The notes beneath the pieces were generated by a model. It ran no database searches, was not told the origin of the DNA, and worked only from the letters and a program-made list of their open reading frames with translations. The position numbers were made by a program, and so were the translations under genes. From Azolla caroliniana (taxonomy: Eukaryota > Plantae > Polypodiophyta), in assembly GCA_043228905.1 (NCBI GenBank), contig JBHGNT010000027.1, forward strand, positions 429,058 through 493,057: a stretch of DNA of 64,000 nt, in the 5' to 3' direction. Below are positions 11,261 through 62,371 of this stretch, piece by piece. Numbering within the stretch: the stretch's first letter is position 1; each line of letters starts with the position of its first letter.

Positions 11261-12159
11261 TGGTCAATTTCTGCCATACGAGGCAGGTTGATGAATTCAT
11301 GTGCAATATTTGAATTTTGGTGTGACTCTTGGTTGGAGAAGGCCACACCACAGTTGGTCTCTTCTCCATAAGCCGGACCGCCAACGTCAAGGCGAGATCA
11401 CATTGGTCCAGTCCCCGCATAGCCAGTGGAAGGGTGAGGTGCATCCACTCAGATAGCATGGGGAGGTCGAATGACTGCGGCCACGTCAATCCGCTTCTTT
11501 TCTTTTCTTGTTGGGCCGCTAGCAATTGTCTAGCTTCTGCTACCAACTCCCCCATCGGGCCGTCTGACTTTACCGTAGCCGATAAGTAGCGTTAATCGTC
11601 TTCATCGCGCTGATGAAGCAGCGGGTTCATCCACCACCTTGGTTCTTCCCCGCAAGCAACTTCCGCCGTATTATCCATAGCTGTTCATCAAGAAGGCCTA
11701 GAGTTAGTTTTCCGATAAGATTCAAGCTACAATTTCAAACAGCACCTTTTCTTCATGAAGCGCAAGAAAACTGCACTGCGGAAGAAGAAGAAGCGGTAAA
11801 AAGTGTAATATAAATGGCTACCAAAGTTCTTCTTTTGAACTTTCAAGAAGGCCTGAATATTCATGGATTATTATACGATAATCTTTAATGCGGCTCAGAT
11901 TGCGGAAAGAATTGAATGCTGGAATTTCGAAATTCCGTTGGTAAAATTCAGAAGGATCATGCAAGAAGGCAATATCATCTTCTGGCCATAATCTGCGAAT
12001 CCAGCAAAGCAAAGCAAAGCAGCACTTTTCTTTTCACTTTAAACCGAGCCGGCGGCAATCTTGATGAATCACTGGCAAGAAGATGCTTTGCACTTTTCTT
12101 TCCACTTTAAAGCAGCAATCTTTTCACTCGGAAATGGCAAAAGAGCTTGGAAGAAGAAT

Positions 12160-40059: not shown

Positions 40060-40095
<36 letters not shown>

Positions 40096-40268
40096 AGCTG
40101 CTTTCGTTTCTTTGGGATTCGGCCCAAACTGTTTGGCAGATTCCCACGCGTTACGCACCCGTTCGCCACTTTGTCTTCAACTGTTCTATAGACGAAAACA
40201 ACGTTCGACTTGCATGTGTTAAGCATATCGCTAGCGTTCATTCTGAGCCAGGATCAAACTCGGTTTTT
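38439..40268 (-). rRNA. rrn18: Mitochondrial 18S rRNA, copy 2
   Basis: Matches 9430-11260 except for one deleted nucleotide near 38560. Confidence 0.97.
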
Positions 40269-40999
40269 TGGTCAATTTCTGCCATACGAGGCAGGTTGAT
40301 GAATTCATGTGCAATATTTGAATTTTGGTGTGACTCTTGGTTGGAGAAGGCCACACCACAGTTGGTCTCTTCTCCATAAGCCGGACCGCCAACGTCAAGG
40401 CGAGATCACATTGGTCCAGTCCCCGCATAGCCAGTGGAAGGGTGAGGTGCATCCACTCAGATAGCATGGGGAGGTCGAATGACTGCGGCCACGTCAATCC
40501 GCTTCTTTTCTTTTCTTGTTGGGCCGCTAGCAATTGTCTAGCTTCTGCGTTTAGTTTTTTTTTTCGCTCTCGAACGGTTACGATGAACCGGTGCATATGG
40601 CCGGAGAACCAACCTTTGGTTCGAGATGGATTCGGCCTTCCCTTACGTCATGTTCATGGCCTTGCATTCCAATGATCACTGCGCTTCACTTGGCTCCAGA
40701 GAGCAAGAAGGCCTAGCTAGAACAACAATCTCAGTGACAAAATTGACCTCGGCTAGAAGGTTACGTAAGTGAATTTCAGTCGGGCCAGCAGCAGTGTTCA
40801 CATGTTCATAGATGCTCCAATGAAAAAGCATAAACATCACGAAGCCCGTCTAAAGTTTAGTTTTTTTCTTCGCTGAAAAGCAGCAGCTCTCGATACACTG
40901 GTGCATATGGCCGGAGAACCAACCTTTGGTTCGAGATGGATTCGGCCGAAGGGAGTGAGAACCGGCGTGTTGGCATTAACAATCATGCTCTCATCTTTC

Positions 41000-41533
41000 G
41001 AATCAGTCGTTACGGGGTCAATGAGCTAGCTCGTAGCTACGAGAGAGATTCCCTAAGAACAAGGTGGTTCTGGAATACGAGATAAAGCAACGAGGACAGT
41101 GGGAACAAGACCTTTTGGTGGTGGGACCCTGGACTGTTTAAGTGTTGGTCCCGGGGCACCTATCCTGGCGCATTCTTGCTTGCTTGCTTGCTTGCTGAAC
41201 CCGGGTTGGCGTTAGCTAACCGCCTACCAAACTTGACCTGCTTTCATCTTGGGGCCTGACCCGCTTTATTCCTCGTCGTTGAGGGCGTGCTTGCTTGCTT
41301 GCTTGCTTGCTTGCTGGGGCACTCGACCGCAATAAAGGGAGAGAAGCTTTCACGACTTCCCACGGTGTGGCCATTACTCTCAAAGGGTAAGCTGGTTTCA
41401 CCGTTATGAGCCAGTTATTGAAAAAGCGTTCGCACGCTTGTGGGGCGAAAGGCCAGAGGAGGACTCCTTTTCCCTCTTCTTGTGGTCCTTCGGACTTCAA
41501 CAAAGGAACGGCGGAGTCGTAGCTCTTTGATTC
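41000..41533 (-). other. 5' part of a group I intron in rrnL (rrnLi825g1-like), copy 1; left end approximate
   Basis: rRNA homology stops after GGCTAGGGGT; candidate P1 AGGGGU/GUUCCU; P/Q/R-like elements ATAACGGTGAAAC, CACACCGTGGGAAG and CCCGTAACGACTGA; no 3' exon follows. Confidence 0.65.
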
Positions 41534-42543
41534 ACCCCTAGCCACGAGTCATCCCCGTATTTTGCCACATACGTGAGTTCGGTCCTCCAAGGCCTCTGTG
41601 GAGAGCTCGATTCAACCTGCTCGTGGCTAGATCAATCGGTTTCGGGTCAAATAGAAACAACGCCGAAGATTCAACCTCGTTGCGCCTACACCTAATGGCT
41701 TAAGCCGCTGTTCCCATTCACTCGCTGACCCATTATGCAAAAGGTACGCCGTTAGGGTGGAAAGTGCTAAAGCGAGAGCCGACAACGCGAAGCTTCGCTC
41801 AAGGGTTCGCGTATGCGAACATTAGTGGCTTTGCCTCCGAAAGCTACAGCGCTTTCTCAGCTTCGCGTATGCGTTCCATCGAACATTAGTGGCTTTGCCG
41901 CATTTTCTCAGCTTCGCTCTTCCGACTGATAGTTTGCATCGGATTTCAGGTTTTCTATTGCACTCCCGGCATACGGCGGGGTCTTTTCACTTTTCCCTCA
42001 CGGTACTTGTGGTACGCTATCGGTCATTGAGGAATACTTAGGCGCGGGGGTGGTCCCCCTTAGTCACGTAAAGCGATCATTATTCAAACACGGTATCCGC
42101 GTTTTGTAATGGTAATCAAACTTGCCAGGAAAGATCTACGGGGCTATCACCTTCTTTGGCCAGATCTTCCAACCTTTTCAGAATTCCTTGAGGAAGGGTT
42201 CCCACCCTTCCCTCTACTGCAAGTTCTCCCCCGCACGGGGCCAGGGAAAGCGGCCCTTCTGGGCTGGGGCCCCTTCCCTTTTCTTTGCCTAATCCGCTTT
42301 CGCTCGCCGCTACTAACGGAGTCTCAGTTGATTTCCTTTCCTTTAGCTACAATGATGTTTCAGTTCGCTAAGTTTCTCAAGTCCGAGGCAGAGCCGCAGC
42401 ACACGGCATGCCCGGCAAGCTTGGATACGGTTTCCCGATTGGAAACCCATGGATCACAGACGGTATCTCCCCATGGCCTTTCGCCTTTGGAAGCGTCCTT
42501 CCCTCTCAATGCCCAGGCATCCATCCAATGCATTCTTTTCGAT
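41534..42543 (-). rRNA. rrn26: Mitochondrial large-subunit (26S) rRNA, 5' segment only, copy 1
   Basis: GAATGCATTGGATGGATGCC, GAACTGAAACATC, CCGTTAGTAGCGGCGAGCGAAA, CAAGTACCGTGAGGGAAA, CGTACCTTTTGCATAATGGGTCAGCGAG and GGGGATGACT.GTGGCTAGGGGT. Confidence 0.93.
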
Positions 42544-42621
42544 GCAGTAGGAGTTGAACCTACCGAACACCGTACAAAATCTTAATGAGTGTTCTGCGAT
42601 CGCCACTCAACCTGTGACTGC
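42543..42621 (-). pseudogene. Degenerate tRNA-Met(CAU)-like element abutting the rrnL 5' end (also 60616-60694)
   Basis: GCAGTCACAGGTTGAGTGGCGATC...CACT-CAT-...GTAGG-TTCAACT-CCTAC-TGCA: intact T arm, shortened acceptor 3' strand. Confidence 0.5.
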
Positions 42622-42843
42622 TTAAAACCGAGACAAAAAGAAGCCCGCATAGATTATTATACAATAATCTTCGGACGTTTGTAAAATGCGGAAGAAGCGC
42701 GGAAAGAATTGGTCGAGTACTTGGACAGAGGATTCATTGTTTCGACGAAAACGTCTACCAAATGACCCTGCATCCTCTGTTTTTTCCTTTACGCTCTTGA
42801 GTTCTCTTTCCGTGCTGTGCGATACGAAGTTTGTACAATCCGC

Positions 42844-42881
<38 letters not shown>

Positions 42882-43166
42882 AAGGGCTTCGTCCTTCCTC
42901 CTTTCTTAGCGTCTCGTTTAACTAAACACTTTAGATTTCCCTGACAAGTTCCCTAGCTCTCTCGAGCGTAAGAGTTGAGGAACAGATTTTCCGATAATGC
43001 ATGCCAGCCAGGGATTTACGCATCATTGGTATTGTGTGTTTACCGTTCTAATCTGTCTTCACATCCATAGCTTGCTTTTTTGCGTTGTCGTACGCCTTTT
43101 CATTGTTTCTGGCTGATATCAGATTCGCATCTGACCTTTAGGCAATCGCATATACGATTTGAAAGG

Positions 43167-43284
43167 GTCCGGGCTGTCGAACCACGTCTCCCGAAAATTA
43201 TCAGTACATATGGCAGAAAACGCTTTTCACATATCGAGGTCGGAATGGGATCGGGTGTTTCACGTCTTACAAAGATGCCCGGAC
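43167..43284 (-). rRNA. rrn5: Mitochondrial 5S rRNA, copy 1
   Basis: CCGGGCA...AGACGTGAAACACCCGATCCCATTCCGACCTCGATATGTG...CCATATGTACTGA...TTCGGGAGAC...GCCCGG. Confidence 0.93.
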
Positions 43285-43346
43285 GGAACGAAACGCTTGA
43301 TTAATGAACAAAAGAGTGCTAACGACAAAAGCGGCGGGCGCCGAAC

Positions 43347-43383
<37 letters not shown>

Positions 43384-43835
43384 GGAAAGTGCAAATACAG
43401 CTGGTACTTAGCCTTCGATCGCTACCAACCTCACAAGGATGTCATCAATTCGCAGGTGGTTATTAAGTAAAAAGTGTAATATAAATGGCTACCAAACCAA
43501 AGTTCTTCTTTTGAACTTTCAAGAAGGCCTGAATATTCATGGATTATTATACGATAATCTTTAATGCGGCTCAGATTGCGGAAAGAATTGAATGCTGGAA
43601 TTTCGAAATTCCGTTGGTAAAATTCAGAAGGATCATGCAAGAAGGCAATATCATCTTCTGGCCATAATCTGCGAATCCAGCAAAGCAAAGCAAAGCAGCA
43701 CTTTTCTTTTCACTTTAAACCGAGCCGGCGGCAATCTTGATGAATCACTGGCAAGAAGATGCTTTGCACTTTTCTTTCCACTTTAAAGCAGCAATCTTTT
43801 CACTCGGAAATGGCAAAAGAGCTTGGAAGAAGAAT

Positions 43836-43906
43836 AGGCTAGGGACGGAGTCGAACCGTCATTCCAGGATTTGCAGTCCAATACATTGCCATTATGTTAC
43901 CCAGCC
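43836..43906 (-). tRNA. trnC: tRNA-Cys(GCA), copy 2
   Basis: Identical to 12160-12230. Confidence 0.93.
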
Positions 43907-44112
43907 AGCAGAACGTTTTTCCCGCTTAAATGAAGAGAGGCGGGACTCTCATTTAAGGGGGGTGACCTTAGGCCACCCTTTGAAATAATCTAAAGCCTTA
44001 CAATCAATTTCTGCGATGCCATAAAATGTGAACCAACGACAACGATTTTGGGCAAAATAAGAATTAGTGATTGAAAAAGACCCGCAGCTTGCTTGTGAAG
44101 CCGACCAGCGTA

Positions 44113-44263
44113 CTGCCAACACGACTTGTTTATGCCTATTAAAGAACCTTTTAATGCTAATTCACAGAAAACTATACGAAGCATACAAAATAACTAATAT
44201 ACGAAACGGAAGCGACCGATGGAAATACGTCAGTTTCTTACTCATGTAAATAAACTATTTCTT
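44113..44263 (-). pseudogene. rps14: 5'-truncated rps14 exon 2 fragment directly downstream of rps1
   Basis: Identical to 12437-12587; junction at 44263. Confidence 0.8.
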
Positions 44264-57102: not shown

Positions 57103-57518
57103 GCCAACACGTCGGGAATCCCCCATTCCAGAGATGACGGGGTCAGGCCCGTTAGGTCCGAAGTTGTATGCCACTAGCTGTAGTGCCGATAGACTTATTA
57201 CTTCAGCGCCGTCATTGAACATCGCAAGCTGAGCATCCATTTCCTGTACATTGCCTATACTGGAAGCGGGAATGCGTACCTCCAACGACTCCGAGAATGG
57301 AACCATAGGCTTCTCATTGGCTAGGGGAGCCTTCTCAATGCATAGGTAGCACCTCAACTTCCCGTTTCTGGCACGCTCTAGTCTCTTGAGTCTCCCGACG
57401 TCAGACGAGAATTTCCCTTGATTCTCGTCTCTCATTTGGTAAGCCAGATACTTTGTGGACTGTAGAGGTAGTCCGGTGCGTTTTGTTGCACTTCCATCAC
57501 CTTCGTCAAAGGGCGCAC
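56517..57518 (-). other. Group II intron cox2i373g2
   Basis: 5' GTGCGCC after AIGH(Q)(W)Y(W); domain V GAGCTGTCTGCAGGGAAACTTGCAAGTACAGTTT; ends CCCAAC. Confidence 0.92.
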
Positions 57519-57924
57519 TCCGATACCGTTAATGTCCAATAGCTTTGATGATAATGGCTAGATCTACCACCTAGTCCATCAAATATAATAAAGCGAAAGA
57601 TAGTATAACAATAAACATCAGAACGAAACTGAGAGGAATGGTCCAAATAATCTCTGTAGTAGTTCCGTGAACCATTCTTTCAGGAATGGGGTTTCTTCGA
57701 TAATGGAAATGCCATAAAGTGCGGACCAACATCCATAGTACGAAGATCAGAATAATGATTAAGAGGACCGGAATATCGTGATGTGAGTCAATTATTCCTT
57801 ACATCATAGGTATGGCTGCGTCCTAAAATCCCAATTACCAAGGTTCTGCGGCGTCACGAGGAGCAATTGGGACGAATAGCTACCAAAAAAGGGTTCTCGA
57901 AATCACTAAGAGGCGTGTGCCCAT
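57519..57924 (-). CDS. cox2: Cytochrome c oxidase subunit 2, exon 1 (ATG 57924 from a cox1-derived patch, or GTG 57906)
   Basis: DAAEPW(Q)LGF(Q)DAA.PMM(Q)[25 protein letters not shown] and IKAIGH. Confidence 0.95.
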
Positions 57925-59072
57925 TACGAAAGAATCATGCTCAAATATTCCTTTCAACGACTTCTAAGTCTGTTCGGTTTTTTCCCTTTTTCTCTCTCCT
58001 CCATATGCATGGGAGTTAAAGGTTGGTTCTTCAACAAGTCGCAGCAATGCAATGCAATGCAATGCAATGAAGGCCTTCGCTTTGTCTCGTCGACCGCAAA
58101 CAAAGCGGCGATGGGCTGGCTTTCCGCGTTTCCGTAAAGAAAATCGAAAGAACTCTGATTGATTCTTATTCGTAGTTGGGATGCAGGGATAGATTTATTT
58201 CTTCCTCGAAGAACCGTACGAACGATTAGGCCGCTGCGATTTCCACACGCAGACACGCGGATTCAGCATGAAGGGCGGGCGATTTATTCCCCGATCGAAC
58301 GAATGAATGAATGAATGAATAGGGTGTCGTTCGCAATGACAAGGAACGTTAGCTGGAAACGCGGTCAACTAACGGGCACAAGTGCAATATTTTCATTTTG
58401 GTGTGACTCTTGGTTGGAGAAGGCCACACCACAGTTGGTCTCTTCTCCATAAGCCGGACCGCCAACGTCAAGGCGAGATCACATTGGTCCAGTCCCCGCA
58501 TAGCCAGTGGAAGGGTGAGGTGCATCCACTCAGATAGCATGGGGAGGTCGAATGACTGCGGCCACGTCAATCCGCTTCTTTTCTTTTCTTGTTGGGCCGC
58601 TAGCAATTGTCTAGCTTCTGCGTTTAGTTTTTTTTTTCGCTCTCGAACGGTTACGATGAACCGGTGCATATGGCCGGAGAACCAACCTTTGGTTCGAGAT
58701 GGATTCGGCCTTCCCTTACGTCATGTTCATGGCCTTGCATTCCAATGATCACTGCGCTTCACTTGGCTCCAGAGAGCAAGAAGGCCTAGCTAGAACAACA
58801 ATCTCAGTGACAAAATTGACCTCGGCTAGAAGGTTACGTAAGTGAATTTCAGTCGGGCCAGCAGCAGTGTTCACATGTTCATAGATGCTCCAATGAAAAA
58901 GCATAAACATCACGAAGCCCGTCTAAAGTTTAGTTTTTTTCTTCGCTGAAAAGCAGCAGCTCTCGATACACTGGTGCATATGGCCGGAGAACCAACCTTT
59001 GGTTCGAGATGGATTCGGCCGAAGGGAGTGAGAACCGGCGTGTTGGCATTAACAATCATGCTCTCATCTTTC

Positions 59073-59606
59073 GAATCAGTCGTTACGGGGTCAATGAGCT
59101 AGCTCGTAGCTACGAGAGAGATTCCCTAAGAACAAGGTGGTTCTGGAATACGAGATAAAGCAACGAGGACAGTGGGAACAAGACCTTTTGGTGGTGGGAC
59201 CCTGGACTGTTTAAGTGTTGGTCCCGGGGCACCTATCCTGGCGCATTCTTGCTTGCTTGCTTGCTTGCTGAACCCGGGTTGGCGTTAGCTAACCGCCTAC
59301 CAAACTTGACCTGCTTTCATCTTGGGGCCTGACCCGCTTTATTCCTCGTCGTTGAGGGCGTGCTTGCTTGCTTGCTTGCTTGCTTGCTGGGGCACTCGAC
59401 CGCAATAAAGGGAGAGAAGCTTTCACGACTTCCCACGGTGTGGCCATTACTCTCAAAGGGTAAGCTGGTTTCACCGTTATGAGCCAGTTATTGAAAAAGC
59501 GTTCGCACGCTTGTGGGGCGAAAGGCCAGAGGAGGACTCCTTTTCCCTCTTCTTGTGGTCCTTCGGACTTCAACAAAGGAACGGCGGAGTCGTAGCTCTT
59601 TGATTC
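59073..59606 (-). other. 5' part of the rrnL group I intron, copy 2
   Basis: Identical to 41000-41533. Confidence 0.65.
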
Positions 59607-60616
59607 ACCCCTAGCCACGAGTCATCCCCGTATTTTGCCACATACGTGAGTTCGGTCCTCCAAGGCCTCTGTGGAGAGCTCGATTCAACCTGCTCGTGGC
59701 TAGATCAATCGGTTTCGGGTCAAATAGAAACAACGCCGAAGATTCAACCTCGTTGCGCCTACACCTAATGGCTTAAGCCGCTGTTCCCATTCACTCGCTG
59801 ACCCATTATGCAAAAGGTACGCCGTTAGGGTGGAAAGTGCTAAAGCGAGAGCCGACAACGCGAAGCTTCGCTCAAGGGTTCGCGTATGCGAACATTAGTG
59901 GCTTTGCCTCCGAAAGCTACAGCGCTTTCTCAGCTTCGCGTATGCGTTCCATCGAACATTAGTGGCTTTGCCGCATTTTCTCAGCTTCGCTCTTCCGACT
60001 GATAGTTTGCATCGGATTTCAGGTTTTCTATTGCACTCCCGGCATACGGCGGGGTCTTTTCACTTTTCCCTCACGGTACTTGTGGTACGCTATCGGTCAT
60101 TGAGGAATACTTAGGCGCGGGGGTGGTCCCCCTTAGTCACGTAAAGCGATCATTATTCAAACACGGTATCCGCGTTTTGTAATGGTAATCAAACTTGCCA
60201 GGAAAGATCTACGGGGCTATCACCTTCTTTGGCCAGATCTTCCAACCTTTTCAGAATTCCTTGAGGAAGGGTTCCCACCCTTCCCTCTACTGCAAGTTCT
60301 CCCCCGCACGGGGCCAGGGAAAGCGGCCCTTCTGGGCTGGGGCCCCTTCCCTTTTCTTTGCCTAATCCGCTTTCGCTCGCCGCTACTAACGGAGTCTCAG
60401 TTGATTTCCTTTCCTTTAGCTACAATGATGTTTCAGTTCGCTAAGTTTCTCAAGTCCGAGGCAGAGCCGCAGCACACGGCATGCCCGGCAAGCTTGGATA
60501 CGGTTTCCCGATTGGAAACCCATGGATCACAGACGGTATCTCCCCATGGCCTTTCGCCTTTGGAAGCGTCCTTCCCTCTCAATGCCCAGGCATCCATCCA
60601 ATGCATTCTTTTCGAT
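59607..60616 (-). rRNA. rrn26: Mitochondrial 26S rRNA, 5' segment, copy 2
   Basis: Identical to 41534-42543. Confidence 0.93.
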
Positions 60617-60916
60617 GCAGTAGGAGTTGAACCTACCGAACACCGTACAAAATCTTAATGAGTGTTCTGCGATCGCCACTCAACCTGTGACTGCTTAAAA
60701 CCGAGACAAAAAGAAGCCCGCATAGATTATTATACAATAATCTTCGGACGTTTGTAAAATGCGGAAGAAGCGCGGAAAGAATTGGTCGAGTACTTGGACA
60801 GAGGATTCATTGTTTCGACGAAAACGTCTACCAAATGACCCTGCATCCTCTGTTTTTTCCTTTACGCTCTTGAGTTCTCTTTCCGTGCTGTGCGATACGA
60901 AGTTTGTACAATCCGC

Positions 60917-60954
<38 letters not shown>

Positions 60955-61239
60955 AAGGGCTTCGTCCTTCCTCCTTTCTTAGCGTCTCGTTTAACTAAAC
61001 ACTTTAGATTTCCCTGACAAGTTCCCTAGCTCTCTCGAGCGTAAGAGTTGAGGAACAGATTTTCCGATAATGCATGCCAGCCAGGGATTTACGCATCATT
61101 GGTATTGTGTGTTTACCGTTCTAATCTGTCTTCACATCCATAGCTTGCTTTTTTGCGTTGTCGTACGCCTTTTCATTGTTTCTGGCTGATATCAGATTCG
61201 CATCTGACCTTTAGGCAATCGCATATACGATTTGAAAGG

Positions 61240-61357
61240 GTCCGGGCTGTCGAACCACGTCTCCCGAAAATTATCAGTACATATGGCAGAAAACGCTTTT
61301 CACATATCGAGGTCGGAATGGGATCGGGTGTTTCACGTCTTACAAAGATGCCCGGAC
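61240..61357 (-). rRNA. rrn5: Mitochondrial 5S rRNA, copy 2
   Basis: Identical to 43167-43284. Confidence 0.93.
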
Positions 61358-61419
61358 GGAACGAAACGCTTGATTAATGAACAAAAGAGTGCTAACGACA
61401 AAAGCGGCGGGCGCCGAAC

Positions 61420-61456
<37 letters not shown>

Positions 61457-61908
61457 GGAAAGTGCAAATACAGCTGGTACTTAGCCTTCGATCGCTACCA
61501 ACCTCACAAGGATGTCATCAATTCGCAGGTGGTTATTAAGTAAAAAGTGTAATATAAATGGCTACCAAACCAAAGTTCTTCTTTTGAACTTTCAAGAAGG
61601 CCTGAATATTCATGGATTATTATACGATAATCTTTAATGCGGCTCAGATTGCGGAAAGAATTGAATGCTGGAATTTCGAAATTCCGTTGGTAAAATTCAG
61701 AAGGATCATGCAAGAAGGCAATATCATCTTCTGGCCATAATCTGCGAATCCAGCAAAGCAAAGCAAAGCAGCACTTTTCTTTTCACTTTAAACCGAGCCG
61801 GCGGCAATCTTGATGAATCACTGGCAAGAAGATGCTTTGCACTTTTCTTTCCACTTTAAAGCAGCAATCTTTTCACTCGGAAATGGCAAAAGAGCTTGGA
61901 AGAAGAAT

Positions 61909-61979
61909 AGGCTAGGGACGGAGTCGAACCGTCATTCCAGGATTTGCAGTCCAATACATTGCCATTATGTTACCCAGCC
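61909..61979 (-). tRNA. trnC: tRNA-Cys(GCA), copy 3
   Basis: Identical to 12160-12230. Confidence 0.93.
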
Positions 61980-62185
61980 AGCAGAACGTTTTTCCCGCTT
62001 AAATGAAGAGAGGCGGGACTCTCATTTAAGGGGGGTGACCTTAGGCCACCCTTTGAAATAATCTAAAGCCTTACAATCAATTTCTGCGATGCCATAAAAT
62101 GTGAACCAACGACAACGATTTTGGGCAAAATAAGAATTAGTGATTGAAAAAGACCCGCAGCTTGCTTGTGAAGCCGACCAGCGTA

Positions 62186-62371
62186 CTGCCAACACGACTT
62201 GTTTATGCCTATTAAAGAACCTTTTAATGCTAATTCACAGAAAACTATACGAAGCATACAAAATAACTAATATACGAAACGGAAGCGACCGATGGAAATA
62301 CGTCAGTTTCTTACTCATGTAAATAAACTATTTCTTAACAACGGCGACGACTTTTCCGGAGTCTTATTTCG
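62186..62371 (-). CDS. rps14: Ribosomal protein S14, exon 2, copy 2
   Basis: Identical to 12437-12622. Confidence 0.85.

Follow-up and report, generated by a model that had tools for sequence, protein, structure and literature searches.

The 64,000 nt of Azolla caroliniana DNA analysed here (the window) contain the first ~1 kb of a large-subunit rRNA gene (rrnL) twice, and each copy runs out into what resembles a group I intron and then into a different gene, which raises the question of how a complete LSU rRNA is made. The initial annotation had proposed a gene broken inside the intron, with the exons brought together by trans-splicing. We asked where the remainder of the gene lies, whether its exons are ligated, and whether the two parts of the intron reside on one RNA or two.

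Two 5' parts of rrnL and the intron behind them

Since it also holds two complete rrn18 genes, many tRNAs and group II intron domains (Rfam), the window is plant (fern-type) mitochondrial DNA. Matches to Rfam LSU_rRNA_bacteria were found on the minus strand at 42532-41489 and 60605-59562, from model position 15/16 onward, and agree with the earlier description of ~1 kb of 5' rrnL that stops in both copies at GGCTAGGGGT (41543-41534 in copy 1 and 59616-59607 in copy 2; Table 1). Both pieces are embedded in a 3958-bp direct repeat (40306-44263 = 58379-62336), whose arms are 99.9% identical by self-comparison. Rfam returned no further LSU match in the 64-kb window, the start of exon 2 was absent from it even with 3 mismatches allowed, and no S element was present in it; the reported lack of S element and 3' exon is confirmed. 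The genes named as downstream neighbours, rrn18 behind copy 1 and cox2 behind copy 2, were recovered as Rfam SSU and COX2_TM matches, respectively. The cox2 frame is readable from ~57906, and its stop-free piece (57798-57574) matches COX2_TM with E = 4e-16. In ferns, in-frame stops are removed by editing; the first 135 codons of this frame (window 57500-57906) include four, which would need U-to-C editing.

Contigs from DNA run X5 follow rrnL over its first 470-560 nt and then part from it (loose ends at 42074 and 41985); they represent extra partial copies of the rrnL 5' end, which also has the higher depth (~220 vs. 135). In RNA and contigs carrying a second organism label, 5 nt are missing at each of 41892 and 42259; these are strain or species indels in expansion segments.

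Table 1. Positions in the window of the rrnL 5' halves, their intron features and the neighbouring sequences.
Feature	Position	Strand	Basis or remark
rrnL exon 1, copy 1	41534..42543	-	~1 kb, 5' end approximate; Rfam LSU model positions 15 to ~825
5' splice site U41534 / G41533	41533..41534	-	junction reads
P1 extension hairpin, includes GTTCCT (41509-41504)	41455..41533	-	fold
Internal guide sequence GGCCUUUC+GCCCC (P10 + P1)	41442..41454	-	complementarity to both exons
P2-like hairpin GCGU-GCGA-ACGC, GNRA loop	41426..41437	-	read from sequence
P-like element UUAUUGCGGUCGAGUG	41320..41333	-	stem search
5'-half-specific intron body	40549..41441	-	(GCAA)n microsatellites, two 44-nt element copies, R-like AACGACUGAUUCGA (41011-40995)
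Segment X, copy 1	40322..40548	-	common to 5' half and 3' half; R-like invariant block inside
rrn18 leader, copy 1 exit from intron	40321-40270	-	same arrangement in independent assemblies L011, L047
rrn18 after copy 1	40269-38439	-	Rfam SSU
rrnL exon 1, copy 2	59607..60616	-	Rfam LSU match and self-comparison
Intron part of copy 2	58363..59606	-	as copy 1 through X (58621-58395), plus 32 nt of 3' part
Flank D: spacer, then cox2 start	57574..58362	-	translation and COX2_TM match
Third X copy (11540-11298) after flank C (11795-11541), then rrn18	11298..11795	-	self-comparison; C-X-rrn18 contigs

The sequence that follows exon 1 begins as a group I intron would. The fold of 41545-41438 reaches -42.2 kcal/mol (z = -3.05) and pairs GGGGU, the last nucleotides of exon 1, with GCCCC (41446-41442), forming a P1 with the canonical U.G pair at the splice site; the adjoining GGCCUUUC is exactly complementary to the 8 nt with which exon 2 begins, GAAAGGCC (P10, 8 bp). 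With up to one mismatch allowed, the 13-mer guide occurs in the window only at the two intron copies, against 0.13 occurrences expected by chance. The hexamer GTTCCT, previously taken for the P1 guide, sits instead in the P1 extension hairpin, a stable fold of the 79 nt that separate splice site and guide, the true guide being GGCCUUUCGCCCC at 41454-41442. Within the P-like element, GGUCGAGUG can form 9 bp with CAUUCGACC (40481-40473, in segment X), a pairing that is not significant alone in the stem search. As to the P/Q/R-like elements reported earlier, the sequence is indeed the 5' part of a group I intron, but the Rfam group I model does not recognise it and gave no match in 40270-42700, 41180-41560 or 40290-41200. 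The R-like element placed at ~41008 (AACGACUGAUUCGA) lacks comparative or profile support, and a better one lies in an invariant block at 40424-40395. The intron had also been drawn too short: 41000-41533 is less than half of the intron-derived sequence, which reaches position 40322 in copy 1 and position 58363 in copy 2.

Two kinds of repeats punctuate this region. A 44-nt element with a GAACC/GGUUC hairpin occurs twice per intron copy (40900-40943 and 40590-40633; 58973-59016 and 58663-58706); RNA and DNA contigs branch at its borders, and it may be dispersed elsewhere in the genome. Microsatellites of the type (GCAA)n (41289-41315, 41175-41196, 40062-40095, 42845-42882 and 43347-43382) are frequent, lying inside the intron, inside rrn18 and near repeat borders.

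Ligated rRNA and the missing 3' half

Two poly(A) RNA-seq runs (as raw reads), one rRNA-depleted RNA run (as contigs) and one independent DNA run were aligned to 40200-42700. At 41531, 99 and 143 reads from the two runs (242 in total), together with one RNA contig, leave the window sequence and continue as AGGCCAACCAAGAUCGGCAAUAGCUGGUUU, which lies outside the window and is identical to exon 2 of public contigs. In these reads U41534 is joined exactly to GAAAGGCCAACC..., the continuation is fully consistent, and nearly all reads that reach the end of exon 1 are ligated to exon 2. Three nucleotides, GAA, fit both sides, which puts the junction after U41534 (GGGGU|GAAAGGCC) and gives the bacterial-type LSU sequence. 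Stranded RNA depth is 110-220 over exon 1, 0 above 42552 and 0-5 over the intron sequence that follows. A DNA contig from the independent sample (41323-42072) crosses the border between exon and intron, so the intron is real DNA. The rRNA is thus ligated across the intron site, with precise excision at the RNA level, and the ligated 26S molecule that the initial annotation had suggested looking for is present in the junction reads and the RNA contig.

The rest of the gene, which had likewise been marked for a search together with its upstream intron half, was found in public contigs. Scanning metagenome contigs with the 33-nt start of exon 2 recovered nine, eight of them high-coverage mitochondrial contigs in which 90 nt (L004:78-167) precede exon 2; the order of the 3' half in public contigs is the 243-nt segment X, these 90 nt and exon 2. 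The 90-nt part carries an S-like element, a GAAA hairpin and a terminal G, the intron ending in ...GGCUUG; UAUAGUCUAACC and the GAAA hairpin align, weakly (E = 1.9), to positions 225-251/253 of the Rfam model Intron_gpI (RF00028), where 225-251 is the J8/7-P7'-P9 region (a 27-nt S/P9 piece). Past the exon-2 start the rest of rrnL (~2.15 kb, model 736-2925) is continuous; this fern therefore has a single rrnL intron, in agreement with the published Azolla preprint (bioRxiv 10.1101/2022.12.23.521604). The intron is at the rrnLi825g1 site, inserted between GGGGU and GAAAGGCC by alignment to the LSU model on both sides. That the break coincides with the site of the Haplopteris intron, as first proposed, is upheld by this junction and by the 8-nt exon of a second fern described below.

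The 5' body shows no significant similarity to the 90-nt part (E = 0.24), and candidate 9-bp stems between them, sought as intermolecular duplexes, were no better than shuffled controls. Two further observations were made around exon 2. A low-coverage contig (L005:1-2149) holds just the intron's final 31 nt and ~60 nt of exon 2, flanked by a CT microsatellite and retroelement-like DNA, and is probably a further nuclear fragment of mitochondrial DNA; and a 217-aa antisense gene near exon 2 reads through stops.

A segment shared by both halves

The sequence directly upstream of the 90-nt part proved identical to window 40548-40322 (L004, L031). Segment X is thus present in both halves, in the same orientation and 99-100% identical, over 243 nt, or over 259 nt when copy 2 is counted. 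Copy 2 runs further than copy 1, its extra 32 nt of 3' part occupying 58394-58363 (...GUUAGUUGACC) before the cox2 spacer begins, and this arrangement recurs in L036/L046. X is entered from two sides, the 5' intron body (A) and flank C, and left in three directions, towards rrn18, the cox2 side and exon 2; the existing combinations are A-X-rrn18, A-X-cox2, C-X-rrn18 and C-X-exon 2. X is evidently a recombining repeat with at least four contexts. Given these four combinations, the cis form, A-X-exon 2, should also arise: a single crossover at X would yield a continuous gene with an intron of ~1.3 kb.

In RNA, contigs that enter X from C have a depth of 73 and those from the 5' body a depth of 18. 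In the rRNA-depleted run, contig depth jumps inside X, at 40411, from ~73 to ~2145 (window 40330-40411), and at 40320/40321 the signal is mostly of the exon-2/cox2 type (2443 vs. 330 of the rrn18 type). The jump may come from a promoter or a processing site in X, or from a 3' intron fragment that is stable; reading it as an RNA 5' end at ~40411 is tentative, as contig ends can also reflect sequence variants.

A second fern offers a comparison of the core. In one of its contigs (L043:497-947, run SRR18067428), X and the 90-nt part are contiguous and 84-85% identical to those of the window's fern. Its homology begins at the same X boundary (GCAGAAGCUAG...), and the DNA upstream resembles neither A nor C. 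Behind the intron, the 8-nt exon GAAAGGCC gives way to GUGCGAC, with which the group II intron rrnLi833g2 begins, an intron that the window's species lacks; an 8-nt exon followed by GUGCG has been described for Haplopteris and Pteridium (PMC10027690; bioRxiv 10.1101/2022.12.23.521604). The 30-nt block GGGGACUGGACCAAUGUGAUCUCGCCUUGA (40424-40395) in X is invariant across all copies, is R-like and is a candidate for the 5' strand of P7; its GGACU/UGGAC can pair with the S element. In L043 the S element carries a U-to-C change that turns a G.U pair into G-C and so remains compatible with pairing, and the P9 loop changes from GAAA to GAGA with the stem kept. Applied to L031, L042 and L043, the Rfam group I model matched nothing except the 27-nt S/P9 piece, and the core as a whole went unscored.

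Two assignments of P7 fit this comparison of three near-identical sequences. Our preference is for the one that pairs the invariant block with the S element, since it agrees with the Rfam alignment and has a canonical J8/7-P7' motif; by this assignment both window copies would lack P8', J8/7, P7', P9 and the terminal G. The alternative would put P7 wholly inside X (CAGUC/GACUG), include a 9-bp P3- or P4-like pairing of 41328-41320 with 40481-40473, and place the break in P9, as modelled for Haplopteris. The initial annotation had the core split after the 5' strand of P7; exon 2, the terminal G and the candidate 3' strand of P7 (S) do lie elsewhere, but the halves are not cleanly divided and overlap by X.

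A probable assembly of one intron from two RNAs, and its known relatives

We looked for an unbroken gene among public contigs and by exact-protein look-ups of ORFs in or spanning the modules. About 14 public contigs carry the 5' module and extend beyond 40483, leading into rrn18 (L011, L047 and similar), into the cox2 side (L036/L046 and similar) or through a 65-nt stub of X into a tRNA cluster (L010, L044, L045 and similar), and none leads into exon 2. The last of these is a fourth context of exon 1 and the 5' intron module, absent from the window (L010:1-4440, L044, L045), in which the stub (cf. window 40483-40548) is diverged, with the variant ggcgcggccca and a 5-nt deletion, and precedes three tRNA genes; in DNA run X5 this variant recurs as a loose end at 40530. 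No unbroken rrnL was found among the ~40 contigs examined, and among 5.8 billion proteins no product that spans X, whether it begins in A or in C, ends in exon-2-type sequence. The C-X-rrn18 arrangement was assembled repeatedly. All exon-2 contigs stop inside X, and in none of the public assemblies is exon 2 reached through X, whichever side one starts from; that A-X-exon 2 is absent is for this reason weak evidence. Contig coverage of the 5' module relative to exon 2 was 53:27 and 31:23 in two assemblies, which indicates that some of the 5' modules, at least, have no linkage to exon 2.

The only direct evidence on the DNA upstream of the 3' half comes from a 670-nt contig (L042, 88-93% identical) that reads copia-like coding remnant, flank C, X and 3' intron part. 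It has the look of mitochondrial DNA that entered the nucleus long ago, and probably fossilises a C-X-exon 2 arrangement. Its nuclear origin is based on the flank motif DADWAG...DRRSTSGY, which we take to be a copia-like RNase H coding remnant; Pfam gave no match for the 47-aa flank. The exons with their intron parts accordingly occupy separate DNA contexts, there being no exon 2 in 64 kb and different DNA upstream of the 3' module.

We favour, with a probability of about 0.6, a model in which separate RNAs of a 5' and a 3' module assemble into one ribozyme that trans-splices rrnLi825g1. The 5' module would consist of rrnL exon 1, the long P1 hairpin, the two-exon guide, ~900 nt of lineage-specific sequence and the conserved 243-nt X, and would be made in rrnL5'-rrn18 and rrnL5'-cox2 arrangements, presumably by co-transcription with these genes. 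The 3' module, made separately, would comprise flank C, X, the 90 nt with J8/7-P7' (S), the P9 GAAA hairpin and the terminal G, and the remaining 2.15 kb of rrnL, uninterrupted. The two RNAs would then assemble through putative core helices that bridge the molecules, and exon joining would follow the usual group I chemistry. The established facts around which this model is drawn are that the exons are exactly ligated, that one guide forms both P1 and P10, that the intron ends in G, and that the halves lie in separate DNA contexts and overlap.

The most serious competitor is cis-splicing. A recombinant or master isoform would carry exon 1, the 5' body, X, the 90 nt and exon 2 without interruption (intron ~1.3 kb), and the window copies, with their rrn18 and cox2 ends, would be by-products of recombination at X and 32 nt beyond it. 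Such an isoform would sit well with the occurrence of X in at least four contexts and the 32 nt of 3' part kept in copy 2, and the near-identity of the X copies implies that exchange is ongoing. The annotation of a single, correctly spliced cis rrnL intron in Azolla (bioRxiv 10.1101/2022.12.23.521604) also speaks in its favour, although that study used short reads, which cannot resolve a 243-bp repeat. The lack of significant complementarity between the half-specific parts and of an Rfam score for the core as a whole counts against the trans-splicing model. Against cis-splicing, the cis junction pair turned up in no contig, ORF product or fossil copy, and the one direct view upstream of the 3' half, L042, shows flank C. 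On balance we consider cis-splicing the less likely explanation. That the window copies are dead, with the functional rrnL complete elsewhere or the LSU rRNA left in two pieces, is highly improbable: X5 does contain the partial rrnL copies noted above (first 470-560 nt, loose ends 42074 and 41985), but exon 1 as in the window is transcribed at rRNA level with nearly all end reads ligated to exon 2, the guide matches both exons perfectly, and no second, different exon 1 was seen. The initial annotation had itself named an LSU rRNA that stays as two unligated pieces as contrary to its proposal; this is excluded by the junction reads.

Were the trans-splicing model correct, rrnLi825g1 might be split in a second fern lineage (probably Salviniales) and in an undescribed way, with overlapping halves that each contain the 243-nt core module, a 5' half in rrnL5'-rrn18 and rrnL5'-cox2 arrangements, and the P7 3' strand, P9 and terminal G supplied by the other RNA only; we advance this fuller picture tentatively, at somewhat less than even odds. 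As the homology with L043 begins at that X boundary too, the split could be of old date and common among leptosporangiate ferns rather than peculiar to Haplopteris. We found no description of a split rrnL intron in Azolla or Salviniales in the literature. The short-read Azolla mitogenome was reported to have a single rrnL intron of ordinary type, in a preprint that describes ferns as having no known trans-splicing intron (bioRxiv 10.1101/2022.12.23.521604); trans-splicing here would contradict that ordinary intron. Natural trans-splicing group I introns are very rare; the Haplopteris paper (PMC10027690) lists only those of Isoetes, Trichoplax, Helicosporidium, Gigaspora and Haplopteris, with the Haplopteris case alone in an rRNA. 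A split rrnLi825g1 in a second fern lineage would mean that Haplopteris is not a one-off, and would provide a natural bimolecular ribozyme with a duplicated module common to both halves. Should a cis isoform exist instead, the locus would illustrate how repeat-mediated isoforms in long-read fern assemblies can mimic split genes.

Among known systems, the closest is rrnLi825g1 of Haplopteris, which is trans-spliced (PMC10027690). Compared by description, the two share the gene, the site GGGGU|GAAAGGCC and a ligated rRNA, and in both a fern mitochondrion with many recombination repeats has the exon 1 module duplicated on a large repeat. They differ in that Haplopteris rrnL has three more introns, including rrnLi833g2 after the 8-nt exon, whereas none follows here, and in that its break is modelled in P9.0/P9.1, whereas here the 3' module carries an S-like P7' and the halves have 243 nt in common. 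The cox1 intron of Isoetes engelmannii (PMC2731911) is similarly a discontinuous group I intron in a highly recombinogenic genome, with alternative routes downstream of the 5' exon; its 5' half, however, contains the whole core (P1-P8), the break falls in P9/L9, the interrupted gene encodes a protein and no overlap is reported. The locus also resembles the recombination isoforms that plant mitochondria form at intermediate repeats, where an identical repeat joins a module to alternative neighbours. The phenomenon and the intron site are thus already known from Haplopteris; what is distinctive here is the overlap of the halves and a likely different break point.
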